Shown: positions 7,280 to 64,000 of the stretch, piece by piece
Position numbering within the stretch: position 1 is the first letter of the stretch
Layout: every line of letters starts with the position of its first letter
From: Hyphochytrium catenoides
Lineage: Eukaryota; Protista; Hyphochytriomycota
Direction of reading: 5' to 3'
DNA length: 64,000 bases
Assembly (NCBI GenBank): GCA_900088475.1
Contig: FLMG01001193.1
Coordinates: 70,866-134,865, forward strand
Notes under the pieces: model-generated
The model's input: only the letters and a program-made list of their open reading frames with translations
Databases searched by the model: none
What the model was told of the DNA's origin: nothing
Made by a program: the position numbers and the translations under genes

Positions 7280-7369
7280 AGAGAAAGAGAAAGAGAGAGA
7301 GAGAACTGAGAGATTGAGGAAGAGACAAAGGGAGACAAAGAAAGAGATAGAGACAGGGACAGAAGAGGG

Positions 7370-7407
<38 letters not shown>

Positions 7408-7440
7408 GAGACAGAGAGAGAGAGGAAGAGAGAGAGAGAG

Positions 7441-7485
<45 letters not shown>
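7280..7485. repeat. Imperfect (GA)n/(TC)n microsatellite
   Basis: About 200 bp of gagaga/gacaga. It explains the spurious SLSLSL and ERER ORFs. Confidence 0.95.
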
Positions 7486-8458
7486 ACAAGAAGTTTGGTG
7501 GAAGCTTCTCATCTTGATGAGCACAAGCACATGGAGAAGTGAGCTTGGCCTCAAAGAATCGCCGCCCTCCCGCCAATCTAGCCTTACATCTCACTAAGGA
7601 TAGCTGATCGTTAACCGACCAAATAAATTGGAGCTTTTTGGTCTCTCTCTTCCTCACTTTTCCTTCACACCATCATCATCACAGTAGGCCACATCGCCCA
7701 CCCATCCGGCCTTGGGGGTATAGCTTTTATTGGTGCTTGCTTGATAATTGAATGTGCCCACCCGCCGCTCAAGGGGTGCAACCACATCAGAAACAAAGAA
7801 AAGGCCAAAGAGACAGGGCCTTGCTTGCGAGTGGGACAAAAAGAGTGCGAAGAGAGAGTAGAATTGAGGGAATACAAGTATGGAATGTTGGCAGACAGAG
7901 CGACAGAGAGAAGCGCCCATCCAATGCTCATCTTGGTCTGACCAACTGAATAGGCGGCAATTTCCAACATCCTTGCAACTTCAAGCTCATCATCAGCGGC
8001 CAGCTAGCTTATCATCAAGACAACCGGAGATCACAGCGGGAGGAGACCAGACACCTGGAAGGAGCAAAGATCAAAGGAAGTCCGACATAAAGACATCAGG
8101 GTGAAGCCCACTCTGGTATACACTTCAAAGGATGGCAAGAGAGAGTTGAGCGATGTTGTTCCTCCTAGTCTTTCTATCTCCTCAAGTAAAGAGGACAACT
8201 TCTAAGTCGTACGGCTTCTAGCTCTTTATCATTGTGACGTCTTCAGCTGTTTTAACCCTTAGGTAACGGGCAGGGAGCTGCTATAAAAGTGCCCCTGTTG
8301 GTCACAGTGTGGGGGTGCGGAAAGCAGGCAGAAGAGTGATGACGAGAATGGCATCCACATGTTGCTTATGAAGCTCGATACGCCCACGACTTTGGTGATA
8401 AAAGGCACCTTGAGTAGCTCCTTCGCTTTCCTACCGTTCCTGGTCCCCGAAGGGCCAC

Positions 8459-9034
8459 ATGAGGTTCTTCTCGCCAACCAGTAATAATAGAGCTCACTTC
8501 TGCCGGGCCCTCAGCTCCGCGCAGCCACAGCGACAGCTCAGAGCCATTGTGGCTTGCTCGAGCAATTATGTAATAGGGTTCAAGGGCCGGCTACCTTGGC
8601 GCTTCGATTGCGATTGGACACATTTTTTAAGGACTACAGCAGGAGGGGTCATCATTGTTGGTCGTCAGTCATATGAAGAGCTGAACTACGCCATCCCAGG
8701 AAGAGAGACTATCGTCATATCCAATTCAAGGCGTCGATTTCATGACGCAGTGCGTGCGGGATCCGTCGAAGATGCTCTGTCGATGGCCGAGGAGCATTGG
8801 CCAGCAAAGGACGTTTGGATATGTGGAGGTGAAAGGATTTATCAAGCAGGACTGCCATACTGTGGAGAGCTTTACATTACTCGAATTATGGCAGACTTTG
8901 AGGGTGACAGATATTTCCCTTCTTCGTGGAGAAAAGACTTCCCCGTACTTTTGACATCGCACGTGGAAGACGAGAGAGGCTATCGTTTGAATTTCGAATT
9001 GTACAGTAGGGCATCGCCGTTAGAAGAGCCTTAA
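8459..9034 (+). CDS. DHFR: Monofunctional dihydrofolate reductase, intronless, with a possible mitochondrial presequence
   Basis: AIVA..NYVIG..GRLPW, conserved Asp in DWTHFLRTT, IVGRQSY, IPGRETIVIS, ICGGERIY, LYITRI and EGDRYFP. The stop follows with no TS domain. Confidence 0.92.
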   Translation: MRFFSPTSNNRAHFCRALSSAQPQRQLRAIVACSSNYVIGFKGRLPWRFDCDWTHFLRTTAGGVIIVGRQSYEELNYAIPGRETIVISNSRRRFHDAVRAGSVEDALSMAEEHWPAKDVWICGGERIYQAGLPYCGELYITRIMADFEGDRYFPSSWRKDFPVLLTSHVEDERGYRLNFELYSRASPLEEP

Positions 9035-29368: not shown

Positions 29369-32300
29369 ATGGATTCTAGGGCGGTCGCCAGATGGGTTGA
29401 AGATCAGCTGCATGGGCTTGTCGGTTTTGCCGATAGCACTTTGGCGAAATATGTCGTAGCTCTCGCAGGAAAGGCAAAGTCAGTGCGAGCACTGACGGAC
29501 CAGCTCTGTGACAACGACTTCCCTAGGACCAGTGCGACCAAAGCCTTCGCACAGGAACTCTTCGAGAGAGCTGGATCGAAAAGAAACGGTGCTTCCAAAG
29601 CTGAAGCTCCGCAAAGACTGACAAACGCTGAGATAATCAAACAGCAGCAGTCCTATGGACTCGTCCTCTCTGATGATGAAAATGAGAAGAAAAGGGCCAA
29701 AGCAAAGGACCGACGAGAGAAGGAGAAGTTGTTGACGAAGGACAAGGAAAAAAGGAAAAGGAACCTTCGGCGAAGGGAGAATGCTAACCCTGAAAAGGAG
29801 TCAAGCGAGGATGAGGGACCTGCTGTCAAGCGCCCGCTTCGCAAGGATCAGCAGAACGAAGCGGATCCTGAGAAGCAACATGAGGACGAGAGAGAGAGAG
29901 ATTTAGCTGAGCGCTTCGCATTTGAAGAAAGACTGCGCAAGAGAGATGAGGAGAAGACCAAAAAGACGGGATCAAAGGGGCTTTCCAAGGCTCAACTTGA
30001 GGAGCTCGCCACACGAGGGACGTATACAGACAATACGGACACCTCCATTCAAAAGCTTCGAGAGGTATCGCGACAAGAATACCTGAAAAAGCGAGAAGAG
30101 AAGGAGCTGGAGCTTCTAGACTTCTCCCTCAGAGATGAAGACTACCTTTTCGAAGATGTAAGTCGGACGGAGTTTGAAAAAAGCCGTATGGAGCTCAACA
30201 AGCGCATTTTGGAGACAGCCAAGAACAGATCCAAGGACATGGAGAAAATTAAAGCCAGCGGCTATCATATTCCGGATGGGTTCGAGGATGAGGAAGGCCG
30301 GTACGACTCTCGCAAGAAGGAAGAGCTTTTGACAGCACGGTATGAAGAGGAAGAAGTCTTCCAAACCGAGCAGGAAGTATGGGAGGAGCATCAGGTGGGG
30401 ATGAGCACCATGAAGTTTGGCGCTCAGGACAAGAGGAAGGCGGAAGAAGAGTACGAATATATGTTTGAAGATCAAATCAACTTCATTTCGGAGGAGGTTC
30501 TTGCAGGAAATGATCCGGAGGCAAAGTATGATGAGGCAGAGCTCAAGGCTAAGCTGGAAGCAGCCGCAATGGATAGCCTCCAGGAAGTACGAAGAAAGCT
30601 TCCAGTTTACCCGTATCGAGAAGAATTTTTAGAGGCGGTCCGTGACAACCAAATCCTTATTGTCGTTGGAGAGACAGGGTCAGGCAAGACCACACAGCTA
30701 CCGCAGTACCTCCACGAAGTAGGATATTCACAAGTCGGAAAAATAGGCTGTACGCAGCCACGTCGTGTGGCGGCAATGAGTGTTGCCGCCCGTGTGGCTC
30801 AGGAAATGGGCGTCAAGATTGGGAACGAAGTCGGCTATTCCATCCGCTTTGAAGACTGCACCTCCGATCGCACCATTATCAAATATATGACCGATGGTAT
30901 GCTACTTCGAGAGTTTCTTTCGGAGCCAGACCTCAAAGCCTATAGTGTGATGATGATAGACGAGGCCCACGAGAGAACTCTTGCTACGGACGTTCTTTTC
31001 GGGTTGATCAAAGATATTGCCCGCTTTCGGGAGGACATCAAGATCATCATCTGTAGCGCCACCCTAGATGCCGAGAAGTTCAGCGACTACTTTGATTCGG
31101 CCCCTATTTTCATCATTCCAGGCTACGCCTATCCTGTGGACATTCTCTATACGAAGGCGCCGGAAGCTGACTACCTGGATGCGGCCATTGTCACGGTCCT
31201 GCAGATTCACATTACTCAGCCCCTGGGAGACATCTTGGTATTCCTCACAGGGCAGGAAGAGATCGAGACAGCTGTAGAGATTCTTCAGCAACGAACACGC
31301 GGTCTGGGTTCTCGCATCAAGGAACTGATGATATGTCCAGTTTATGCCACGCTTCCTTCTGAGCAACAGGCCAAAATATTTGAGTCGACTCCTCCAGGCG
31401 CTAGGAAGGTTGTTCTTGGAACTAATATTGCAGAAACATCTTTGACAATTCCCGGGATTACGTACGTCATTGACACGGGGTTCTGCAAGCAGAAGAACTA
31501 CAACCCCCGCACAGGGGTGGAGTCTCTGATGGTTTGCCCTGTCTCTAAAGCTGCAAGCCGGCAAAGGGCAGGTCGTGCGGGTCGTACCGCTCCTGGAAAG
31601 TGCTTTAGACTTTTCACTGCTTGGTCCTTTCACAATGAGCTGGAGGACAACACGGTGCCAGAAATTCAGCGAACAAATCTCGGCAACGTCGTGCTAATGT
31701 TGAAGAGTTTGGGCATTAATGACCTCCTCCATTTTGACTTTATGGACCCGCCATCGCCCGAAGCACTGATACGGTCACTAGAACAGCTTTACGCACTTGG
31801 TGCTCTCAATGATAGAGGCGAGCTAACTAAACTGGGTCGCAGAATGGCGGAATTTCCAGTAGATCCCATGCAGTCCAAAGCCATAATTGAGTCTGAGAAG
31901 CATGGCGTAAGTGAAGAAGTTCTGACGATCATGTCCATGCTCAGTGTCAACAACTCCATTTTCTATCGCCCCAAGGACAAGGCCATCCATGCGGACACAG
32001 CCAGAATGAACTTTGCAAGAGGCGGAGTGGGTGACCACATTGCGCTGCTTAACGTCTACAACCAGTGGGCAGAGACTAACTACTCAACTCAGTGGTCCTA
32101 TGAAAACTTTATCCAGCTTCGAAGTTTAAAGACTGCCAGAGACGTTCGAGAACAGTTGGCAGCTTTGTGTGACCGCGTTGAGGTGGAAAAATTGAGTAAC
32201 CCAACTGATCTGGATGCGATACGGAAAGCGATCACAGCCGGCTACTTCTATAATACGGCCAAGTTCGACAAGAGTGGCCACTATAAGACCGTCAAGCATG

Positions 32301-32533
32301 CCCATACTGTGCACATCCACCCGTCCTCATGTCTTTTCAAGGAAGAGGAGATGCCACCGTGGGTACTCTACCATGAGCTGGCATTCACTTCGAAGGAGTA
32401 CATGAGGCAAGTTATCCCTATCAAGCCAGAATGGCTGATTGAAATAGCACCACATTACTATCAAGCCAAAGAGGTAGAAGATAGCAGGAACAAGAAGATG
32501 CCCAAGATGGTAGGAAGAATAGCAGCGCACTAA
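29369..32533 (+). CDS. DHX16: Pre-mRNA splicing DEAH helicase DHX16/Prp2, single 1054-aa ORF
   Basis: PWI-like N-terminus, GETGSGKTTQLPQYL, TQPRRVAAMSVA, DEAHER, SAT, TNIAETSLT, QRAGRAGR, HA2/OB regions and a KKMPK tail. Confidence 0.97.
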   Translation: MDSRAVARWVEDQLHGLVGFADSTLAKYVVALAGKAKSVRALTDQLCDNDFPRTSATKAFAQELFERAGSKRNGASKAEAPQRLTNAEIIKQQQSYGLVLSDDENEKKRAKAKDRREKEKLLTKDKEKRKRNLRRRENANPEKESSEDEGPAVKRPLRKDQQNEADPEKQHEDERERDLAERFAFEERLRKRDEEKTKKTGSKGLSKAQLEELATRGTYTDNTDTSIQKLREVSRQEYLKKREEKELELLDFSLRDEDYLFEDVSRTEFEKSRMELNKRILETAKNRSKDMEKIKASGYHIPDGFEDEEGRYDSRKKEELLTARYEEEEVFQTEQEVWEEHQVGMSTMKFGAQDKRKAEEEYEYMFEDQINFISEEVLAGNDPEAKYDEAELKAKLEAAAMDSLQEVRRKLPVYPYREEFLEAVRDNQILIVVGETGSGKTTQLPQYLHEVGYSQVGKIGCTQPRRVAAMSVAARVAQEMGVKIGNEVGYSIRFEDCTSDRTIIKYMTDGMLLREFLSEPDLKAYSVMMIDEAHERTLATDVLFGLIKDIARFREDIKIIICSATLDAEKFSDYFDSAPIFIIPGYAYPVDILYTKAPEADYLDAAIVTVLQIHITQPLGDILVFLTGQEEIETAVEILQQRTRGLGSRIKELMICPVYATLPSEQQAKIFESTPPGARKVVLGTNIAETSLTIPGITYVIDTGFCKQKNYNPRTGVESLMVCPVSKAASRQRAGRAGRTAPGKCFRLFTAWSFHNELEDNTVPEIQRTNLGNVVLMLKSLGINDLLHFDFMDPPSPEALIRSLEQLYALGALNDRGELTKLGRRMAEFPVDPMQSKAIIESEKHGVSEEVLTIMSMLSVNNSIFYRPKDKAIHADTARMNFARGGVGDHIALLNVYNQWAETNYSTQWSYENFIQLRSLKTARDVREQLAALCDRVEVEKLSNPTDLDAIRKAITAGYFYNTAKFDKSGHYKTVKHAHTVHIHPSSCLFKEEEMPPWVLYHELAFTSKEYMRQVIPIKPEWLIEIAPHYYQAKEVEDSRNKKMPKMVGRIAAH

Positions 32534-32938: not shown

Positions 32939-35900
32939 CTAGTACTTGACAGATCGGAAAAAGTTTGATGTCATGTCCTTCAGCTGCCGCGAGATAAGAC
33001 GAGCCACGTCACACGTTGCCATTAACGAAATTGAGGGGTTAGATTGATGACAGAGTGGAATGGGACGGTGCGTTAACATTTCGACATCCTTGTCTCTTGA
33101 ACAGTAACAGATTTCCAGTTACCTTGGCCAGATCCTGGGATGCTTTCTCTGCTATGTTACTTGCCAAATCAGCCCCTATGTACACAGTAGTGTTAACACA
33201 CACAAAAGAAGAATCATCAAAGTTGAGAGCAAACAGAAGCTGGAGCCGGAGGCGCCTAAATCGAACGGGGGCCAGCACTGACCAATATCCGAGCCTGAGC
33301 CAGAGGATCTTCGGCCAAAATACATGTCACTCGATATCGCTGTAGCACTGCCATATTGCTGAATCTTCTCCTCCCTTTCATATCGTTCTTGCTCCGACTC
33401 AAACTAGTTGGAATCAAGGGCATTTAGCACTAGCTTAAGAGTAGACAAAGTGCATGGGCTGATGATACCTTTCCTGTGCCAAAGAGCTGGTCGGAAGAAA
33501 TGGCTTTGGCATTTTTGTACTTGTCCACGGTAAAGGAGGCAGGAGCAGCTGGGGGTGCCGCAGAATAGGACGACACTGTACGCATCGGAAACGTCAGAAT
33601 AGGTGGCTCTCTCAAAACTCAATTAAACAAGGAGCATGGATGGGACGCGAATGCTTGGACGGTGGCAAATATAGACGGGGGGAGGCCAGTAGAAAGAAGG
33701 ACAATACTTCAACCTCTGTATAATCACAGCACCATAGACGAAGAATGGCACAACTCGAATTAAGCACTGAAGAAAAGGATACAGCGGCTTCTTCTCCCAT
33801 CGATACCTGAGGATGGCGCAGGAGCTGGAGCGCTGGAATTGTAGCTGTAGGAGGGTGAGGTATCGAAGATTGACGAGGCTTGAGGGGGTGCCGTAGGATC
33901 CCTATTGGATACGGTAAGTATAGTCCAGAAGATAGCTCCCCTTTCCTGTTTGCCACAAACCCCCCGAAGCATGCTTACTCCCGAAGCGAGATACAACTGG
34001 ACTGTGTGCAAGTTTTCGCCTACTGCACCAGTTACTGCACCAGTTAGGGTGCTAGAACTCACCTGTACCGTGATCCACCAGCAACGGCAGGCAGCGTCCT
34101 GATAGAGAAGGGTCAGGTGGGTAGATGGAAGTATACAGACGTAGGGACACGACGACGTAGCTGTAATCAACACTATCGGAGGCTCACCCTTCCTCTTTTG
34201 CTAGAGCTTTGGCCAAAGCCTCATCCTCCTTGAGCTGTTTTTGCGCGGCAGTCTCTTCCGCTGAGGGTGCAGAGGTCTGGAACTGCGGATAGAGAAAACA
34301 TAAGGTACGGTTCATTTACAACGAGTGGCCTCATCAGCCTTCGCACAGGGCTTGCTTTCAGTGATAAAGCACCACTCCGCCTCAAATTTTCGAATCGACT
34401 TACCGAGTCAAAGTCGTCCCCTAACTTCGTAGCCCCCAACTTCTTAGCACCACCCTGAGGATTCCGCATGCAAAGTGAGCACTTGAAGCAATGGCCAAGG
34501 ATGTATTCCGTAAGGAGAAACCCAGACCGCAATTGATGGGCTACAAGACAGAAGAATAAATTGAAAGAAGAGGTTGCCCAGAGGTAGAGTTACGGAAAGA
34601 TAGGGCCTACCAGTCTTTGAGCACCCAACCTCCGCCCACCGAGCGTTGTCTTCTTTGGCCCAACTGCAGTGCTGGATCTTGAAGCCTGTTGTAAACTGGT
34701 TTCGTCGCTCCCTTGCATATCAACCTTTAGTGGGCTCTTCTTCTGTAGAACAACAGGCACTGTCGAATTGCTCGAGGATGCTGTCGACTGGCTAACTACA
34801 CCACCCGGCGCAGACAGATACAAAAAATACGACCGGCAGGATGGCACTTGTTAGTCTAAAGCTCAAGCCAATAAGAGACGGGGCGAGATAGAGACGCTTG
34901 GGTGAATAAGGGACAAGGGCCCTGTTGACTGACCACTAGCAGGCATATGCTGGGGTGGAGGAACGGCCTGGGTTATTTGTTCTGAGGCAGCTTGAGCCCA
35001 TAAAGACAGAGGAGGCGGTGAGCTGCTTGCTTGATCTTCTTTGGGCGGATCCTGTTTTAGATGCTTCTTGTCATGTGCAGGCTGATCCCCCAGGACCACT
35101 TGGCTTAGCATTGCACTGATTGGACTAGGAGGCTAGAGAGAGGTTATCAGTATAGAAAGGAACTGCAACGGAGTGTGAGAGAAGTCCAGAATGATACCAC
35201 AGAACTGACCACTGGAAAGTGGAGGCTAGAACGGAACGCGTCTGGCAAAGGTAATGAAGGGTTACAGGCAAGAGTACTCTCAGAGCACAAAATATATTTG
35301 ACTGACCGACTCTACTTCCACTCCATGGTCATGGGTGGCGTGAAAGCCGCTGTCGATCGCCTTCTTCTGAACTGCTGCTTTGTATAGCTCAGCGGCACGA
35401 CTAGTGAACTTACTTTGAATCTGTTTAGGAGGAAAGACGTCAGTCGAGCATTATGCCCGCCCTACTTGCGCTCCGACTCGTCCACTTACCTTCGTCGTCA
35501 GCTCAACGTTGTGAGACCTAAAGAAATCCCTTGCAGGACCATTGCCGCCAACCTGCATGACAGCCAGCTGCTCCGGAGTCCACTCATCAAGCTCTGTTGA
35601 TCTTAGCGTTTAAGGGAGACCCGTAAGGAAAGCGTGAGACGGGCATTCTCCATCAAAAACATCTATCTAGTCACCTGACAAAGGTTATGTGAACACCCAT
35701 TCTCCTGTGAACCGCTGAGCAGTCATAGCAAATGAAGATCCCGTAGGTTACTGATGCCCAGGTAGGGTTGGCCGCTGGACAGTCAAAACAGGTCTTGACG
35801 GCACGGTAAGCCTCTTCTACATCACTGCTGTGGCGAGAGCTATAACACTTTACCTTATTCGCCCTTAACGCTTTTAGCTTTCTGAAGATGTCCTTCCGTA

Positions 35901-35970
35901 CCGCTGGGTCAACGAAGTTTCTTCCCGTCAGTTGTAGCTGACCAGCCACGACGTTGAGAGGTGTAGTCAT
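32939..35970 (-). CDS. ARFGAP2: ADP-ribosylation factor GAP, ArfGAP2/3 (Glo3)-type
   Basis: [45 protein letters not shown] and the Glo3 motifs [11 protein letters not shown] and AISSDMYF. Confidence 0.93.
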
Positions 35971-36900
35971 TCTGAGTGCTGACAAGATAGCCTAAGGATA
36001 TTGCCAAGAATACTGAGCCGCTTGGCCCAGAAATCTTTCCCAGATACACTCAAGAGGAGGTATAGTAGTGCTGTGCTGCGCAGGCTTAGGCCTGGCGTAG
36101 ATTCAGTTTGGCGCTCTCTTCAAGCAGGACACCAGGCAGCAGAAGATTGAAGAGCTTGGTGATGTGAGGAGCATGCCGGACGGTAGCGGCTGGAGGAGGA
36201 ACGGATTATCTTGGTGAGAGAGGAGGCAGGAAGCTGATAGATCTGGAAGGGTCAAATCTTCCCCAAGAACGCCAATGTGGGACCAAGAATGTATAATACG
36301 CAGATATAACGACCTGAAAAGCATATATACCGTTTCACCGGTCGTGATGTCTGATGTCTTCATAGGGCGTTACAGTTATAAAAGCCTTTATTATAGTAGT
36401 TCTAGTGTAGGGCGACCTACTACAATAATGATAGAACTTCTACCACTGTAGCCATAATTCTAACAAGGGCAAATCGGCTAGTCAGTGAGACACTGCTCGC
36501 CGACCTTATAGAACTAGATCTATATCGTTTCTTCTACGTTCCTGTATGTCTTGAGGCCAATGAAGATAAATGATGCAGAATATTGCAGATATCTGATTTG
36601 CTCTACTAACTGAGTGGGACGGACTGAGGGCACTCCACGAACGTAGATCGCAGGCATTCAGACACTTTCATCATCCCCACAATATAGAAGCGGGGATCTC
36701 TCACAACCCATGTCGATGGACTACTTTCAACCTTCTGGTCGCAGCTGTTTATCAGGCTTGTTGCTGTCAACAAATGTTGTGCAGAGAACGATAAAGTCTG
36801 AATTGCGGCAGGGATAAGCTTATGATTGGGAAACGTTTGGCGACGAAAGAATGCGATGTGAGTTTCTCGGACGGCAAGGAGAGATGAGAACATGTCTTAC

Positions 36901-53917: not shown

Positions 53918-56900
53918 TCAGTAGTCGAGCTGCTTCAGAAGCTCATTTTTGTTCTTGGCAGTGTCAAGTGTCATTCTTTCTACGTTGGTTAGAACTTTCC
54001 GTCTCTTTTTCCTTTCGTCTTCAAGCTCCAGGAGAAGAGCTTCGAAACCTGTGTTTTTCCTCCTTACCGCTGCGGAAAAGGCTTCTAGTCCCAACGTGAT
54101 GAGCTATAAGAGAAGTAGTTAGCTTCACCGTGTGCTGGGTGGCACTTCAAGCTCATCACTCAGAGGCTGTAAGGGACAAATTGAGCTATTGTGTCCCTCT
54201 TAATTGTGTTCGCCTAACACGTTCTCCCGCTGCTTTTTCCCAACTATCATTTGTCCCCCTCTCTCCAATCCACAAGACCTACTAAGCCACATGGGGATAG
54301 ATATCTATACTCCCCTGCGTATCTAACTCACCATATCCTGTCTGATCGGCTCTTGATGACTTGGGTAGGCACAGTATTTAGACACCAGTTCGGAGCTCAT
54401 TCTTTGTTTTATGAGGACAAATGTGAAGCGCAGAGTTTCTAGGATGATCCGATACTGGTAGGAAGCCGATCGGGAGAAGCTACCGTCACCAGAGGCCAGA
54501 GTTCGAAGCTGCTTTGCATATGCAACGAACTTCACAGCGGTTATAACAAAGATTTCATAAACGTTGGCCTAACGCATTTATCAGAAGAGACATCGAGTTA
54601 GATGAGCACCAATGGACATTGCGAAAAAAAGGACGAGAGGCTTGGGTGGGATATAACCAACCAAGGAGCAAGTAAAGAGAGAAACGATTGACTAGACGCC
54701 AAAGTGTCAGTCTGACCAATTCCCATACTCACCATAATCGTAATTGGAGAGTTGATGCAGAGATCAAGGAGAAGAGCATGGCACTTGGGTTTCACAGCGG
54801 CCTTCAACTTCACTCGAAGCTGCTGCCATGGGGCACGGCCCCAACTTACCGTCAGGCTATCACGTATACTGGTGGACAGATACCTTCCAGCGTGGGGGTG
54901 TACATCAGCGACAAGACCCACATAATAGTTGTTGTATCTCATCACTCATTAAGCGCCCTGGCGCTCCTCTAGCATTCCACTCACCTTTGATAATCTGCAG
55001 AGATTTCAAGCGTGGCGGGATCAATGAGAAGGCCCACCCATGGAATCTTCGCTTTCGTGCTATCTAAGTGAGGTTGAGGTTGTGAGTGCTTAGACATTAA
55101 AGCCGTAACGTACTAACTCCCTTGGCCAGCTCTTTCCATATATCGATGACAGGAAAGCACCTCAACGTTTATCTCTCTGGCCTTGTACAATACAAATTTG
55201 AGTGCCCCGGCTAATCTCCCATCTTACCTGTTGCGTCTCTATCGGATAAATTTGTTAACGTCTTCTCATTAATGGAGCAGCCGAACTCTGGGAAGCCCCC
55301 TTTCATCTTATCCAGAAATCTGCTGGCAACCTCCTGATCGAGCGTGATAAGGAGAAAATCATCTACCAGGCGGAGAAGGAGATGTCGAGTTTCTGGAACA
55401 TCTAAAGGAGATTATGAAGACGAACGAGAAACGGCAGTTAGCCAAGAACGGTAGGAGAAGGATCCATCATAACAGCATATCCAGCTTAGATGTGAAAGTG
55501 AATTGGGACGAAGCAATTGTGAGGAGTGGGTCAAGTGTGCTAAGCACATATTCAGGGAGAAGATCTTGCTAGGATTGGAAGCAGTGGTGGATTGAAGACA
55601 CTCTTTCCAGTGAGAACTCGTCAGGCATACTAAACCGCTGTAGGCTGTAGCAAGTAACCTGCACATTGAGCCTTGCTTTCCCAAAGCTGGCCAAGGCACT
55701 CTTTCTCGACCTTCCCGTAGTAAAGGTTGCAAAGAAGGGTGGAGAGCACAGAGCCTTGAGGTATTCCCTGTACACATTGAACGAACATTGAATAGACCGC
55801 GTCGGAGAGTGTCATGACAACAAGGAAAACATTACGGATAAGGTTGACAAGAGTGACGCAGCTAAAACTATGCCCGGAGTTGCGGGGTTACAATGGGTAG
55901 AGGCCGAAATGACCAGAGTTACCTGGTGTTGCAGATAGTATTTGCCGTCGATACTGATGATATTGCGCCTGATATGTTCTTCGAGAAGATGTTTGATCAT
56001 TTGCCGCTGCAAGTACGAGTAGATGACGCCGTCCGTAAATACCTAATTTGAGCATGACATCAGAGGTAATCAGGAAGCAGTGAGAGGAAGGGGAATGAAA
56101 TGAGGTAGAGGGGCCCACCGATCGTGAATATCTTTTGCACAACTGGTGTGCCTTTGCTATGAACTCTTGATAATCTCCTGGCGAGCAGACATCTAACCTA
56201 AACTAGACGTCCGAAACGGACAACCCAGAGAAAGTGTAATCGTTAGATGTCAAATGGGCAGAAAAGTACAAGGACCCTAAACGTGCCATACCCTGGACAC
56301 CACTCGCTCTATGGAGGGGAGAGGATGCGTCACTTGATACTTTTGGATCAGGTATTCAGTCTCGGATAGGAGTCCAGATATCAACTCCTCAACGCGGTCC
56401 TGACGTATATTGTCGAAGCATCTTTGCACGTCCACGCGCACAAAGAACAAGCCGGGTGACCGACCACTCACCAGAACCTAGGGCAGAGGCGCTCAGTTTG
56501 TTTGAGACCATGTATATCACATCTCCTGGCCTTGTCATAGCACATGGTAGCACACCATCTAGTGATATCTCCCTTCCGAAGGCAGGGGTTTGTGACTTAA
56601 TCTACGCAACTATCACCTGAAGAGGACCCTACGACCCCGCGTCCACTAATTTCTTACTCTCTGAAGTGCTGTTTTGTATGGTAACAGCTTTTCATAGATG
56701 CCGTCATAGCCATATACTCCAGCTCCAAAGAGTCCTTGCCGATGGGTGCACTCATAGCTAAGTACCCTGAAAGGTCCTGCCAGGACTCGGTTGACGGAGG
56801 GCAGCGTCATTGAGATCCGGTTTTTGTTGTTCTTGATCACGGGACCATCTCCATCCTCTTGCATCTAATGAAAGGAATATCGAGAATTGACTGACAATGC

Positions 56901-59813
56901 TGGGATTGGGACAAAAAAAGATAAGGCAGGAGAGCGACGAATCGCGCTACCTCCACATATGGCTTTCGCGATGGTGCTGACAGATTCATGATAGGCCTTA
57001 GACTGTTCCGCTTGGGCAACAGCCTTAATTTGGAGGACCCAAACGTTCGAGATTTGGTGATTGTCAGAGCTTCGTCTGGGGAGAGAGGTGAGAAAAGCTT
57101 CCCAGCCATGTTCCTCACAGTTGCCGCCCTGCAAGTCATAAGAGTAAAATAAAAAGCCGCCATAAGCTTGTGATTCCAGAGAAAAATACCCTCAAGGGTC
57201 AACCCACTTGATACTTCTCCAGACATCCTTCATGAAAAAAACTACCCGGTTCTTATAGACTTCCGACTCTGTGGCATAGAAGTGGCTCTGTAAAAGGGGC
57301 AACGCCACATCGGTGACACACTAATGGCAAAGATGATTAGGACATCAAAGTTGAGCGCAAGCGCAAAGACAACCAAGTCAGAGTTAATCATGAATACCGC
57401 ATTGTATGAAAGCGCACTGACCCAGCTGAGAACATATCCCATTAGGTCCTTGCAAATGTTAAGCTCATTGGGGCTGTTGAAGAATGTCAATGGTGGTTAA
57501 CAAGGGTTAGTACATGAGAGGCAGCAAGGACGGGAGTACATGAGCAACCGGGCCTCACCACTTAAAGTTTGTAGAGTTGTTCAGCCAGGGGACCTGCTTC
57601 AAACAAATCTGGTTCAAGAACTAGCAGGCAATGTCAGATTAGTGGTAATATAAGCATATGAGGGGCTATGTACACCCATGGCTGCCTTAATATTCAGGGC
57701 AGAATAAGCTATCACCTACCACGTCTAGGTATAACTCTTCATATCTCCCACGAAGAACCAACTCAGCCACAGCCGAGAAGACGACCTTCTTATTACTCTC
57801 TGCTCCCCACAGCTCCGCAGGCAACAGTGAATCAAGTACAGAGGTAACGAATCTCAAGACCTGCGATGAAAGGTCAGTGTACTACACCGCCTTGACCCAC
57901 ACTAATCCTGTTACCTGGTGAGTTGGGGTCGCCGCGCTGATAATTTCAGACAGAGGCTCAGGCATGGCACCAGGCACTTCGTCGGATGTGCCGTGAGAAA
58001 CGGCATCCTCTTCCAATAGAACCGTCTGGTCACTCCCCTCCGGCTCAATAACATCTAAGAAAGGGTCAGCTTCACGGGAAGAACATCGGGGCAGGGTTTC
58101 TGCCGACGTTTCATCCTCCCATTCTTGGCTATAGTAGAGCTGGGTCGGAGAGTTCAGAGGGTCGACAAATTCATCGGCCTTCGCCTGCGTAGGGGAGGTT
58201 GTGGGTTGGAAAGTCATCTGACAGATGTGATGTGGAGGGAGAGAATTTGGAGATCAGTTCCACCTTTGCCAAACCAGACGACGTGGGCTGTACCTTGACC
58301 TGGCGGCGGAATATCGCCGAGATGTTGAGTTTACCATATCTCTCCAAGATGCCTTTAGCTAATGCCAGGAGCCGCTGCGCAAGAGCCCAGGAAAAATAAG
58401 TGATTAAATCGTTTGGAAGACATTGGGCTTATTCTCAAAGCTGTCAGCAAGAAAGGAGCTACTATGGATAGANNNNNNNNNNNNNNNNNNNNNNNNNNNN
58501 NNNNNNNNNNNNNNNNNNNNNNNNNNNNNNNNNNNNNNNNNNNNNACCAATCAGCCATGAAGAAGGAATTACGGACCTCGCCAGGGCAACGGAGCAGCCG
58601 GTTAAGTATATGATTTGCGGGAAAGCCTCGTTTAACACTGAAGGTTCCAGCGTAGAACAACGAGGACCGTGGGACAATCAATCTACTCTTGCTCATTGTT
58701 GGATAGGGGACGAAGTGCTCCCTCTTGTTGGAGGATGCTCTAACGTGAACACGCTCATTGGCAGCATTGACATAGTCTGCTATGGGATAACCTGCAAGCT
58801 GCCGAGAAGGGTCATAAGGCAATTAGCCGGAAGAAGGGGAGCTTAAAAGAACAGAAGAACTAACCTGAACATAGCATTTTTTCTCTAGGGGACCGAAAAT
58901 GGCCATATATTGAAGGAGATGGATCATCACCGCATCCCCTGCGTTTACGCACAAGGGGGGAGCAGGCTGACTCAGTAAATGCAGCATTAAACAGGAGTGC
59001 CCCATCCCAGGCTTACCGACACGTGACAGCAACAGCTTCCATGGTTCAGTTCGAAGTGTGCTCAATAGGGTGTTTGGGAAAAAGCATTCAACTCCATTAA
59101 ATGCCGTAGCCTCCAAATTTGGCCCTGGGCGAGCAGGCCGGTAGCCTTTGGACAGGACATTTTGACTTAATCCTGTTGCTTTGTGTCTTTCGAGGGCTTT
59201 GTGCTTCAGCTGTGCAGTTGCGGCTGTATTGGTCCGCACAAGAACCTGTCAAATCCTTAGTTATGAATCATCCATCATCCAGAATACTCAAATGCATCAA
59301 CCAACCTGGATGACTCTGTTGAGAATGTCTTCCTGCCAAATAGAGGTGAGCAAGACTAGCAAGTGCGTGTTATAACTCAGTGAATAGGTCTACCTGTGTG
59401 GAACTCTGCTCAAACGAAGTGATTGTTGTAGGGAACAGTAGTCCCTGGTCCAGCTCTGTGCCTCTTGGCTGGTGTTGCCGTGTGGAAGCAACCAAGACGC
59501 CAAGCAGCAGCTGCACATACCCCGGTGGGTCCTCTTCTCTGATAAGAATAGGGGCCCTTAACTGTGGTAGTGCTAATTGTGCTCTATAGATGAGCCTTGG
59601 AGACTCGATTAGTATGCGGCAGGGGCAGGGTACACGTGTCATACTTGGCGCTACTTACCGCTCCAAGTAGACCTTCAGCGAGCATGCTTCAGGAAAGCAG
59701 AACGAAATCACCGTCTGGACCAATAAGCTTTGTTCGTTTATCCTTGACTTCTTCGCAGCACGCCCTTCTCCGCCTCGCTTTCCGTAGGAATCCTGGACCC
59801 TGGGTCTCTTCAT
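53918..59813 (-). CDS. TERT: Telomerase reverse transcriptase (complete, multi-exon)
   Basis: TEN (EDPPGYVQLL, NVLSKGY, PNT..WKLLLSRVG), QFP, T (FYATESE), 1/2 (LRLLPK..LRPIMNL), A (FVRVDVQRCFDNI), B' (QGIPQGSVLSTLLCNLYYG), C (LLRLVDDFLLIT), D, E (IPWVGLLID) and a CTE ending QLDY*. Confidence 0.96.
58473..58545. other. Assembly gap (N run) within TERT, apparently intronic
   Basis: Run of n. Confidence 1.
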
Positions 59814-60076
59814 GGCTCAATTTCCTCGGCTGTGAATGTATATCTCAGCTCGCAGCACATGTCCCGTGGAATTGGAAGACTTCCAATCTGCGGGCATCAA
59901 CCGATGCAAGCGAGCGAGGCTGTGAGCAGGAAGAGAAAGAAGAGAGAGTCAGGAGAAGCGGAGAAGGCTGATGCTCCTGGCTCGTAACACAGGCATCACT
60001 TGTACTACTGTAAGAAGTTTTGCATAAGATCAGAAGCTCACCAGGAACTCGAGTCAAGTCTCCTTTAGCATCAGGT

Positions 60077-60093
60077 TTCGAAATTGGCGGGAA
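60077..60093 (-). promoter_or_regulatory. Candidate E2F + CHR composite element in the TERT/ORC5 divergent promoter
   Basis: Minus strand reads TTCCCGC-CAAT-TTCGAA (E2F-like site, 4-nt spacer, TTYGAA). Confidence 0.5.
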
Positions 60094-60347
60094 GACCTGG
60101 GCCAATTCCAAATAACATTTAATGGGTGGATATTGTTATGAACTGGTCTGGGTGTGGTTCCTGACAGAGTACATTCACGAAACTTAACGGCACACGAAAA
60201 ACTGTACTGTACTCGTAGAAAGACTCCAAGTGCAGAGATCGCTCCCAACCTTGAGTCACGCTCATTCATCGCTTTCCCCATCATCCCAGGTCCAGGAGAC
60301 TGCTCTCGCCATATGGAGCTTGGCCCTCCTTGACAATCTGGACTCTG

Positions 60348-62267
60348 ATGGAGAAGATTATTGAAAGATGGCCGGGAAGAGGGCAACAGATACAGCTGTT
60401 GTCAAACGTTATCATAGCGGTAAGGAAGAGCAGTCTTTTCTAGTTGCCGGCCTGCCACTTCACTAAAGAGTGTGAACAGGACGCCACCATCCGCGCACCG
60501 ATGATAGTCCTTTATGGAGCTCCTAGCCGAGATATGGCAAGCATTGTTCGGGAGGTCTTAAGAGAGCTGAGGAGAAGAATAATATACGTAAACTGCGTTG
60601 AGCTAGAACGGCCTGGAGAAGTCCTCAATTTGGTGCTTGATCAGATTGAGTTGATGAATAGAAGGGCAGAAGACAATGTTACTGCAGAGATCTCTACCCA
60701 AGAGCTCCCGGTCACAGTCGCCGATCCCACTCCGGCTGAAACGAGTGGGGCAGCTGTTCCCACGGACCATTGGGTCACAGAGTCCTTAGAGACTCCTGAA
60801 CTGTCACCGCCAGACCCGACTACCACAGCTGAGCCGGGCAGTACAGAGACCGCGAATGAATCGGTCTACAGCGATTTTCTTCGACAAATGACGAGTATGA
60901 CTGCTCTAAACAAAGCCACTTACTTGGTAAGCGGCCTCACGTTTATTGAGCTTCACTGTGTCCATTGGACTGATGGATAGCGTGCAAAGGTGCTCGATAG
61001 GGCGGACATGTTGTGCGAACTGATGAAGCCTCTCTTCCTCAGACTACTTGGCTGCCGTGATGTGGTAAGTTGGAACTGGAGCCATTGAGTGCTGGTCACC
61101 TTCTACTAACCAAGCGCTTTGTAGCCATCCTTCAACCTCTGTCCAATTCTGATTGTGTGGGGAGAGCTTAAGGATGCGTTCCGTGAAGCTGTGAGGCTGG
61201 ACCGTCCTTTGTGTCTCCACTTCCCAGCCCTAACAAGAGATATCCTTACCAATTTTCAGCGTTGTAGAGTGAAGACGCCTCATCGACTTTCTCAGCCTCC
61301 CTTTCTCGTTCAAATGTCTTCCTTGACTAGTCTTTGAAACACATCAGGCACACAAGCTAATCCGCGCACGCAGCGGCAGGCATAAGGTAGACCTTATCAT
61401 CTGCAATAAGAAGGCCTATTTCTTTAACCAACCTTTGGTGAACAGAACAAGAAGCTATTTGCAGCTTTCACAAGCAATGCTCTGGGGCAGATAGGCAGCA
61501 TTACGAGAGACTGGAGAGAGCTCTTATTTATCATAGAAAGCGTTTACAAGATCATAGAGCCGAAAGTGGTGGGCACAGAAGGTAAGCACTTTTTAGTCCC
61601 AGGAGTTCCCTTGCGCTGTCTGACTTCGAGCATAGTCGACGGGGCAGATCAAGACCCCACGTCGCACCAGATTGCCGTGATGATGAAAATTGCTCGACCA
61701 CATCTAAAAGCCGTCGTGGATAATCTGTACCACCATGACCTAAGCCTTCTTCGCCGGTCCGAGAGTCACATCTGCCAAAAAGACAGCCACAGTGCCTCAA
61801 CCGGTAAACCGGTACCTTGGGGTCCGACCGCTGATCTCAGCTACAGGGAGAAACTTTTGCTTATAGCAGCATATATTGCGGCATACAACCCGAAGGAGAT
61901 GGATGCCGATACGTTTTCAATAGGTTCAAGGGCCAAGAGACGAAAAGGAGGGGCTAAGCGGAGTAAGGCTGCGGAAGTTCCCCAGCAGCTGTTAGGAGCT
62001 ATGGCGTTCAGTCTGGACAGGCTTGCAGCCATATTTGGCTGCCTTGTACGAGAGTACTGCGATGCAGCTCACCAGCAAGCGCTCCGAGAAGTAGACATCC
62101 ATGTGCTGGTCTCCTCACTAACCAAGAACAGTTTGTTGGCAAGCGTCAAGCCTGGCGTTGAGTTGGATCAACCAAAGTATCGTATACAGGTGAATAGTGA
62201 CCTGGTTGAAGCTCTGGGAGAAGAACTGGACGTCCCCTATCGGAAACTTTTATATTGTGCCGTCTGA
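60348..62267 (+). CDS. ORC5: Origin recognition complex subunit 5 (degenerate Walker A)
   Basis: WPGRGQQIQLL, YVNCVE, YLVLDRADML, LHFPA and the ORC5 C-terminal motifs LLIAAYIAAYNPKEMD..F, QLLG..FSLDRLAAIF, LDQPKYR. Confidence 0.88.
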
Positions 62268-62816
62268 CCAACCTACAGGTTTGCCAAAGCCTCTGTTGCT
62301 GTAATTGCTGCAGCTAGACGTGGTTGGCAGGCACCTTGTTTCTAGACAAGATTCTTTCCTGCTTGCGCCCGGATTGGGAGGTTCCTCTACACGTGACCCC
62401 ATCCAGAGGGAAGTGAACCATTGCCAATAGCGAACGGCAGACTCCCAAGATGTCTCAACAAGTGCACAGCAAGTAACATTAGGACTGCCGCGTGACCGCG
62501 GCGGTCAAGAAGCCATAATCTAAGGGATGCATGCGAAGGGAGATGACCGGGATCTGTTGTGAGAAGAAACAGAAAACTTTGTGTACGGTAGAAAATTGTT
62601 CAAAGTGCTAGATCCTAATGCGACTATATCCAGACATTGTATGTAAAGTATGGTGTGCGTACAATACCCTCAACAGAGATAAGTATGGAAGACGGGCCCC
62701 AAAATTAGTAAATTATGACCTAAGACGATGAAGTACGGACAATCTGAGGATCACTGTTAGTTGAACAATAATTTGACTCTCCGTGGCGTTATTTGGGGCA
62801 CGGCAGGTTATTTGTA

Positions 62817-62836
62817 TTCGAATCTGTGGCGCCAAA
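62817..62836 (-). promoter_or_regulatory. Candidate E2F site plus TTCGAA upstream of GCP2
   Basis: Minus strand reads TTTGGCGC-CACAGA-TTCGAA. Confidence 0.4.
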
Positions 62837-63057
62837 CTCTGTCAATCCTTCAGGACGAGAAGTCTGATCCGCGATCATCAGACCGCGCAAACAGCCATCG
62901 GCCAACATCGGCATCATAGAGGCTTGGGATTCCCAGGACCGGGTACTATGGATGCAACAGCTGCCTCCGCTCGAGCGAACTGCAAGCTGGATTAGATGGG
63001 CCTCAGTCGGGACATCGAAAGGTGACAACTATACGTCGATTTAGTCCTTTCGGAGAT

Positions 63058-64000
63058 ATGTCGACAGCCACACCCAGGGCAGAAATCGAGGAGGTGGTGG
63101 AAAGACTAGTGGCCAAGCTTAGGATTTCCGAGGTAAAAAGACCCCCTAGTGCAACCCGATGCTTTTGTTGGCTAACTTGGAGGTGGTAGGGAGGCAAAAA
63201 GGACTATGTCAAACTTCTATTGAGCGGGATCACGGACAAAAACGTCCCGACGATAGCCTACGAGAAGGTTCTTCAACTCGTGCGCGAACGTAATGATCCT
63301 AGCGGCTTTCAAGATGCCTATGCTCGGCTGTACGCTAAGGTGACTACATGCAACCCAGTTGAACTGCTCTTCTGGCTACCCTAAATTTTACGATGGGATC
63401 TTTTAGGACGTTCCGGAGTTAGATAGGCTTATGACGGTGGTCGCAAGAATCGCTAGTGATAAGTCCTTAACGGCGCTGCTAGCAACTGGCAGACACTTGC
63501 AAACTAGCCGAAGTCGTATGATCTCTGGCCCTATAACACCCTCTGTTTCTGCAAAGACGACAGTCACCAATCCTCTCGCAAGCCCTATGGAGTCGCCCGC
63601 CTTGTCAACCATTGGTGCCCACTCCACTCCATCCTCCTTGGCAACACCCAGTCTGAACTTCCGAGCAGGTCGCTTTGATCCTTCGCTGGAAACGCCAAGC
63701 CAGTCTGGACTTTTCACGTCTACTGTGGTGAGATAACTTTCTCACTCTGTGGGGTTACTGCTCTCAAACCGGTGCTGAGCACGATTTACCAGGCACAAGA
63801 CCCACTCTCACCATCGTCTAGAATGCTGCTAGATAATGAGAGCAAGCGAAGGCTGTCTGCATCTGACTTTAGCTCGGATCCAACGCTTATCCATTCCTTA
63901 GGGAAGGATGACGCTCCGCCCTCTCCAGGTAAGGCAATCAAGTATTTGAGGGGCGGTTCGGATTCGCATCACCACCATTATTTAGGGTCAGATCTTAGGA
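63058..64000 (+). CDS. TUBGCP2: Gamma-tubulin complex component 2 (N-terminal part; runs off the window)
   Basis: Spliced EIEEVVERLVAKLRISEGGKKDYVKLL...DPSGFQDAYARLYAKDVPELDRLMTVVARIASDKSL resembles the GCP2 N-terminal helical domain. GRIP domains are not in the window. Confidence 0.7.

Follow-up and report, generated by a model that had tools for sequence, protein, structure and literature searches.

The window analysed here is a 64,000-nt stretch of contig FLMG01001193.1 of Hyphochytrium catenoides (assembly GCA_900088475.1, contig positions 70,866 to 134,865), and all coordinates below refer to it. It contains a TERT gene on the minus strand, an ORC5 gene on the plus strand and the 5' part of a third, putative GCP2 gene. 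The multi-exon TERT gene occupies positions 53918-59813, its 3' limit being that of the first-pass annotation, and was identified by Pfam domains and a PDB match. The TEN domain, the reverse transcriptase motifs and the C-terminal extension follow one another from the N to the C terminus, all encoded on the minus strand (TEN_TERT at 58823-59239, RVT_1 at 55630-55815, and TERT_C at 54598-54945), and the exon at 56277-56471 matched human TERT structures in the PDB search (E=5e-4). The frame opened by ATG 59813 stops after 52 codons if positions 59584-59658 are kept and joins the TEN-domain frame once they are removed; these 75 nt (minus strand, GT..AG, with a TACTAAT branch-like word) were therefore called as TERT intron 1. 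An E2F-like word, GCGCCAA, lies within this intron at 59645-59651. An assembly gap at 58473-58545 interrupts the gene in the part that separates the TEN domain from the RNA-binding region. Run X1 supplies a Logan contig (2,989 nt) that is collinear across the gap and places 159 letters, in place of 73, between positions 58472 and 58546, and the same joint was found in runs X2 and X3; all three frames of the left flank stop within 40 codons. The gap is clear of both motif pairs described below.

The ORC5 gene extends over 60348-62267 on the plus strand, with exons at approximately 60348-60419, 60480-60926, 60990-61064, 61125-61268, and 61446-62267, the splice sites being read from the sequence. 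Its identity is given by the ORC5_C domain (Pfam, 9e-28) and a match to human ORC5 (1e-12); the position of the AAA+ P-loop (Walker A) reads GAPSRDMAS, without GK[ST]. In a search of an ORC5 exon against 1.8 billion representatives, the best identity was 32%, and the top matches came from fungi, a choanoflagellate, and a green alga. No close relative was among them, and at this distance the promoter is therefore not alignable. The TERT-ORC5 synteny that the first-pass annotation had proposed to look for in relatives was not encountered at four distant ORC5 loci (L001-L004), none of which has a TERT neighbour, and no E2F-type or composite site was present within 1 kb upstream of these four. Among the other genes, the single-exon gene DHX16 has homologues that are 56-74% identical, mostly from stramenopiles and plants. 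The DHFR encoded in the stretch is of bacterial type (36-40% identity) and was discarded as a lineage marker for this reason.

The TERT and ORC5 genes are arranged head-to-head. Their start codons, ATG 59813 and ATG 60348, are separated by a spacer of 534 bp (59814-60347; CpG o/e 0.61), in agreement with the earlier estimate of about 535 bp and within the 1 kb between divergent start sites that is taken to define a bidirectional promoter. The next gene begins at 63058 on the plus strand and runs to the window end at 64000, with exons at approximately 63058-63132, 63190-63339, and 63407-63727, the splice sites likewise being read from the sequence. Its assignment to GCP2 was not confirmed: exon-level searches of PDB, Pfam, and Atlas gave no match for the first ~230 codons, and the diagnostic GRIP1/GRIP2 domains (GCP_N/GCP_C) would fall past the window end.

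Two motif pairs, each composed of a GC-rich E2F-type site and a TTCGAA hexamer, had been reported from the spacers on either side of ORC5, and both are present, in the same orientation, on the minus strand. The pair in the TERT/ORC5 spacer, pair 1 (60077-60093), reads TTCCCGC-CAAT-TTCGAA and lies near the spacer midpoint, as had been claimed, 262 nt from the TERT ATG and 255 nt from the ORC5 ATG. It consists of the palindromic CHR-type hexamer TTCGAA at 60077-60082 and, directly beside it, a 12-bp E2F-type site, ATTGGCGGGAAG, at 60083-60094. On the plus strand the latter contains GGCGGGAA, and its minus-strand reading includes TTCCCGC (cTTCCCGC / GGCGGGAA, 60086-60093), so that the 4-nt "spacer" CAAT is the second arm of the E2F-type site itself. 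The spacer length of 4 nt is the canonical CDE/CHR value. Exact TTSSCGSSAA words number only two in the 64-kb window, this site being one of them, and GGCGGGAA likewise occurs twice. Close by, GCCAATTCCAAA at 60101-60112 repeats TTCGAAATTGGC in inverted form, with 10 of 12 positions matching, and provides a second, opposed CCAAT box (inverted repeat I3).

Pair 2 was placed at 62817-62836, about 220 bp before the third gene, and was found there as TTTGGCGC-CACAGA-TTCGAA on the minus strand, 222 nt from ATG 63058. The hexamer TTCGAA occupies 62817-62822. The E2F-type site, TGTGGCGCCAAA, occupies 62825-62836, includes TTTGGCGC at 62829-62836 (minus strand), and matches the palindromic TTTGGCGCCAAA in 11 of 12 positions; apart from it, the window has just one 12-mer with at most one mismatch to TTTSSCGSSAAA. 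A separation of 4 nt between the E2F site and TTYGAA is thus seen in pair 1 and not in pair 2, in which 6 nt separate the hexamer from the octamer. When extended E2F matches are ranked over the window, both pairs are in the top four. A GC-rich E2F/CDE-type site (TTTSSCGC or its core) is present at both, and TTCGAA agrees at both with the LIN54 consensus of a CHR hexamer, TTYRAA. The pairs are located 222-262 nt from the ATGs, measured here to the ATG, tandem elements being expected within ~200 bp of the TSS. Since the order of E2F site followed by TTCGAA is read only on the minus strand in both pairs, the canonical order (E2F distal, CHR proximal) is found only with respect to TERT, and ORC5 and the third gene have it reversed.

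Composite elements of this kind are known from animals. The CDE/CHR and E2F/CLE tandems bound by DREAM (E2F4/DP and p130/p107 with MuvB, including LIN54) also consist of a GC-rich E2F-type site followed by TTYRAA (PMC5716687, PMC4974476, PMC3287175), and they too are found in promoters of cell-cycle-related genes. The CDE/CHR tandem has a fixed 4-nt spacer (PMC5716687), a spacing that defines both tandem types (PMC5716687, PMC4974476) and that pair 1 shares; TTCGAA fits the LIN54 consensus TTYRAA (PMC4974476). In contrast to the animal tandems, the spacer of pair 2 has 6 nt, and the order is inverted for two of the three genes. A strong E2F site with a perfect CHR is, moreover, exceptional in human S-phase genes, canonical CHRs belonging to G2/M genes with weak CDEs. 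Worm, fly, and human share conserved hybrid E2F/DP-LIN54 motifs, which occur between divergent genes (PMC3093354). The version found at targets of DRM in C. elegans and of dREAM in Drosophila resembles the present pairs in its adjacent half-sites and its frequent position between divergent genes; it has a fixed orientation and spacing (PMC3093354) and was derived from more than 1,500 ChIP-bound promoters, whereas only two sites in one window are available here. Among protists, a similar composite motif was obtained from Lin54 (Anqa1) ChIP-seq in Tetrahymena thermophila (PMC8216455). That E2F/DP-CHR-like motif is comparable in being a DREAM-type composite proposed in a protist, but it comes from a different organism, in which its authors call CHR elements unstudied (PMC8216455). 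The idea of an E2F/LIN54 hybrid motif, already known in animals and proposed in Tetrahymena, is therefore not new in kind.

The most likely explanation of these observations, which as a whole we favour only tentatively, is that both sites are genuine E2F/DP-type cell-cycle promoter elements. In pair 1, the 12-bp E2F site with TTCGAA immediately after it would reproduce the animal geometry of an E2F site and a CHR 4 nt apart. An E2F/DP heterodimer would recognise it together with a tandem-CXC protein, similar to LIN54, from a MuvB/DREAM-like complex, and that complex would repress TERT and ORC5 outside S phase; at G1/S the element would be handed to an activator E2F. Pair 2, 222 nt ahead of the third gene, would hold an E2F palindrome that is nearly perfect; since the register of its TTCGAA is off by 2 nt, it is the weaker candidate for a tandem reading. 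E2F binding, the reading of TTCGAA by a CXC protein, and the cell-cycle regulation of the genes are what we infer from these motifs.

The principal competing explanation, appreciable in probability though still a minority view, is chance: two ordinary GC-rich words would happen to stand beside TTCGAA in neighbouring spacers, neither of them regulatory. Each word taken singly does occur at chance frequency, with 83 TTYGAA against 75 expected and 29 TTSSCGC against ~31 expected in the window. Composites of the form TTSSCGC-N(0-10)-TTYGAA number two in 64 kb, both in the spacers flanking ORC5, and the simulated expectation was 0.14 (N0-10) or 0.04 (N4-6). The window-wide analytic P ranged from 0.004 to 0.17 over a-priori models, being 0.004-0.05 for most literature-based models and 0.17 for the loosest; it rises to 0.07-0.17 where liberal spacing, either side, and TTYRAA are allowed. 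These values refer to two instances of a pattern defined post hoc, once the sequence had been read with an eye to known motifs. Chance is further favoured by the unequal spacers (4 and 6 nt) and by E2F words of equal quality inside genes (40066 and 35542) and at the ArfGAP promoter (36107), where a perfect TTTGGCGC lies ~120 nt upstream of the gene with no TTYGAA. Allelic variation in the Logan contigs neither falls on the motif sites nor significantly spares them, which is also in line with chance. Against it, the promoter DNA that holds both composites, at replication-type genes, amounts to ~1.3 kb, in which about 0.002-0.007 would be expected; both are top-ranked extended E2F matches, and the spacing of pair 1 is exactly canonical. 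A CpG-island confound was rejected: the spacers are not CpG islands, so that composition does not explain the two CpG-containing words. The possibility that the two spacers share a longer motif or arose from a common source was likewise rejected, the best local alignment being elsewhere and trivial, and the number of 9-mers common to both spacers is as chance predicts. The Rfam search of the window gave no match. The adjacency of E2F-type words and TTCGAA in both spacers appears moderately above chance in the window, by a margin that varies with how loosely the literature model is drawn.

Two further explanations accept function at these sites and differ in the reader. It is rather improbable that only the E2F sites work, as G1/S elements, with TTCGAA beside them by accident and no part played by MuvB/LIN54. 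In favour of this, the two E2F sites match the extended consensus strongly, and the unequal spacing speaks against one rigid complex on both words. A precedent is human ORC1, an origin-recognition gene that has an E2F consensus in its proximal promoter and is controlled through this single site without a CHR-like partner, canonical CHRs after an E2F site being rare exceptions in human S-phase genes (PMC5716687). The parallel is limited in that the gene here is ORC5, the distant orthologues of which, as examined, have no upstream E2F word. Against this reading, each of the two sites has a TTCGAA no more than 6 nt away and on the corresponding side (probability about 0.005 per site). Least probable is a different factor, in either of two versions that are jointly given little weight. 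In one, pair 1 would be an arm of the imperfect palindrome TTCGAAATTGGC-N12-GCCAATTCCAAA with two opposed CCAAT-type boxes, through which an NF-Y-like or other dimeric factor would organise the bidirectional promoter. In the other, an unknown dimeric factor would bind the 8-nt palindromes TTTCGAAA and ATTCGAAT, to which both TTCGAA words extend. Bidirectional promoters and cell-cycle promoters typically carry NF-Y boxes, and inverted repeat I3, matching in 10 of 12 positions overall, has a perfect 7-nt core (AATTGGC/GCCAATT). Repeats of this quality, however, are frequent in the spacers (three in 534 bp) and common by chance, CCAAT is followed by T, a base disfavoured there by NF-Y, and pair 2 has no CCAAT box.

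Returning to the E2F/DP-type reading, its components differ in strength. That some functional E2F-type site is present appears about evenly balanced, and a true tandem E2F and CHR element of DREAM type is a more doubtful proposition. As an account of two sites, the DREAM-type reading is a reasonable hypothesis; a DREAM-type switch that co-regulates TERT, ORC5, and the putative GCP2 gene is plausible but unproven. The broader proposition, that the grammar of an E2F site and a CHR 4 nt apart operates with a MuvB/DREAM-like complex in this protist lineage and that one site at the spacer midpoint switches TERT and ORC5 together, is at present unlikely. If the element is real, telomerase would be tied to origin licensing via one common promoter element, and a single 17-bp element with two divergent genes would make a simple test case. 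A distant eukaryote would then join the few lineages with DREAM-type tandem sites, namely animals and, tentatively, one ciliate, and would help to date the E2F and LIN54 promoter grammar. If the broader proposition is true, the composite element would be ancestral to a large part of the eukaryotes and not a feature of animals.

The spacer between TERT and ORC5 and the spacer between ORC5 and the next gene each contain an E2F-type site paired with TTCGAA; both pairs are present where the first-pass annotation had placed them and share the same absolute orientation. Pair 1 (60077-60093) reads TTCGAA-ATTG-GCGGGAA on the plus strand and TTCCCGC-N4-TTCGAA on the minus strand, and straddles the midpoint of the TERT/ORC5 spacer, at distances of 262 nt to the TERT ATG and 255 nt to the ORC5 ATG. 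Pair 2 (62817-62836) reads TTCGAA-TCTGTG-GCGCCAAA on the plus strand and TTTGGCGC-N6-TTCGAA on the minus strand. The E2F-to-CHR order, CHR denoting the TTYGAA-type hexamer, holds in both pairs only in the direction of TERT; for ORC5 and the next gene, both on the plus strand, the CHR comes first and the E2F site second, opposite to the canonical order in animals. The E2F site of pair 1, ATTGGCGGGAAG, includes GGCGGGAA and is one of two words in the window that match TTSSCGSSAA exactly; that of pair 2, TGTGGCGCCAAA, agrees with the palindromic consensus at 11 of 12 positions and is one of two 12-mers in the window with at most one mismatch. Taken as extended sites, both putative E2F-type sites are strong matches.

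The head-to-head arrangement of TERT and ORC5 was confirmed, with start codons 534 bp apart. Three Pfam pieces of TERT lie in N-to-C order on the minus strand, namely TEN_TERT (58823-59239), the RT piece (55630-55815), and the C-terminal extension (54598-54945), and the exon at 56277-56471 matches human TERT structures. The reading frame opened by the proposed TERT ATG at 59813 runs for 52 codons before a stop; this start codon is acceptable, as removal of a 75-nt GT-AG intron with a TACTAAT-like branch word (59584-59658, minus strand) brings it into one frame with the TEN-domain exon. An E2F-like GCGCCAA word occurs within this intron 1 (59645-59651). The plus-strand gene is securely identified as ORC5 (ORC5_C, 9e-28; human ORC5, 1e-12); its Walker A position (60501-60545, +) reads GAPSRDMAS, without GK[ST]. 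Candidate short upstream ORFs precede ORC5 (ATG 60313, 6 codons, 60313-60333) and TERT (ATG 59861, minus strand, 59837-59886). The next gene starts at 63058 on the plus strand and continues past the window end; exons from its first about 230 codons, those within the window, gave no matches in PDB, Pfam, or ESM Atlas. Its label GCP2, taken from the first-pass annotation, is putative.

An assembly gap of 73 N (58473-58545) interrupts TERT 1.3 kb from its start and leaves the motifs unaffected. A 2,989-nt Logan contig of the DNA sequencing run X1 covers 57403-58472 and 58546-59852 unbroken, with 159 letters between them, and contigs of the runs X2 and X3 contain an identical joint; the gap flanks are therefore continuous and collinear. 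All three reading frames left of the gap stop within 40 codons, which places a TERT exon end or intron in or adjoining it.

E2F words of equal quality occur within genes at 35542 and 40066, which counts against specificity. A perfect octamer TTTGGCGC at 36107-36114 (+) precedes an ArfGAP gene (35671-35985, minus strand) by about 120 nt, with TTYGAA absent nearby; E2F consensus words here are thus not restricted to cell-cycle promoters. Between 58.6 and 63.3 kb, five E2F-like heptamers were found versus about two expected, which is not significant. No E2F word was found upstream of the DHFR gene of the window (8459-9034, +; single exon, ~26-aa N-terminal extension), a poor control because it is bacterial-type: its best database relatives are of bacterial FolA size (144-169 aa, 36-40% identity, origin unrecorded). 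This DHFR may be organelle-targeted or horizontally acquired. Roughly 1 kb upstream of this gene is a long (GA)n/GAGA-type microsatellite (7290-7490). The window also encodes an intron-less DHX16/PRP2-type DEAH helicase (29369-32533, +; 1,054 aa), with best matches 56-74% identical, mostly from stramenopiles and plants, and no self or near-self protein in a collection of 5.8 billion clusters.

Against 1.8 billion representatives, the ORC5 exon reached a best identity of 32%, the nearest sequences being from fungi, a choanoflagellate, and a green alga. The TERT-ORC5 synteny did not extend to four distant ORC5 loci: none had TERT as a neighbour, and the 1 kb upstream of ORC5 contained neither an E2F-type site nor a composite in any of them. 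Neither the synteny nor the site is a general property of ORC5. Logan contigs revealed a second haplotype, in which 11 bp are deleted at 62783, TG is inserted at 60005, six SNPs fall at 62861-62923, and small indels are numerous at 60187-60267. In the spacers 59814-60347 and 62700-62930, the level of heterozygosity or mixture in the organism or culture is about 1.5-3%. Both pairs are unaltered in allelic contigs where covered. Their intactness is uninformative either way, since at about 1.6% divergence a 20-mer stays untouched about 70% of the time and the divergent haplotype has no coverage of pair 1.

Separately, the two words are at background level in the window (TTYGAA, 83 versus 75 +/- 9 in shuffles; TTSSCGC, 29 versus about 31 expected by our own arithmetic). 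The composite, a TTSSCGC-type word adjoining TTYGAA, was found only at the two pairs. Markov simulation gave 0.14 expected composites for spacers of 0-10 nt, where 0.3-1.5% of runs contained at least two; for spacers of 4-6 nt the expectation was 0.04. Models set from the literature and not from the window (E2F core; TTYGAA or TTYRAA; spacer 4, 3-7, or 0-10 nt; one or both sides) gave P = 0.004 to 0.17 for the window; with the spacer fixed strictly at the canonical 4 nt, pair 1 alone counts and P is 0.02-0.06. The two spacers have CpG o/e ratios of 0.61 and 0.85 (window, 0.69) and are not CpG islands, so composition leaves two neighbouring CpG-containing words unexplained. The adjacency of E2F word and TTCGAA is moderately unlikely as a coincidence; for the motif pairs as a whole, coincidence is nonetheless a real possibility, short of probable.

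In animals, precisely 4 bp separate a CDE or CLE from the CHR or E2F site, and an E2F site in either orientation is followed by a CHR-type word downstream (PMC5716687); TTYRAA is bound by LIN54 via two CXC domains (PMC4974476). A hybrid E2F/DP-LIN-54 motif of conserved orientation and spacing is known from worm, fly, and human DRM/DREAM targets, including between divergent genes (PMC3093354), and Tetrahymena Lin54 ChIP-seq yielded a similar motif (PMC8216455). Pair 1 matches this grammar well: its 4-nt "spacer" is the second arm of a 12-bp E2F site, as in animal tandem elements; pair 2 agrees in content but differs in spacing. We tentatively consider that at least pair 1 may be a true tandem E2F+CHR element. 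A canonical CHR at the CLE position is present in only one of the human S-phase DREAM targets that have a conserved E2F site, and ORC1 is regulated through E2F alone (PMC5716687). That the E2F sites function alone here is unlikely. Action of some other factor is quite improbable. TTCGAAATTGGC (60077-60088) is repeated in inverted form as GCCAATTCCAAA (60101-60112), with 10/12 positions matching and a perfect core, AATTGGC/GCCAATT. The two opposed CCAAT boxes that result could represent a symmetric NF-Y-type layout for a bidirectional promoter; inverted repeats of such quality are frequent in these spacers, and pair 2 lacks a CCAAT box. No longer similarity between the two spacers was found. 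The 9-mers common to both by the E2F sites, GTTATTTGG (forkhead-like) and ACTCTGTCA (with the TALE/MEIS core TGACAG), are at chance level in number (60108-60116, 60162-60170, 62788-62796, 62807-62814, 62836-62844); GTTATTTGG is repeated twice in the spacer of pair 2.

There is precedent in kind for proposing a DREAM-type element in a protist. If real, the tandem E2F+CHR pair would be a further example of an already known type of promoter element.
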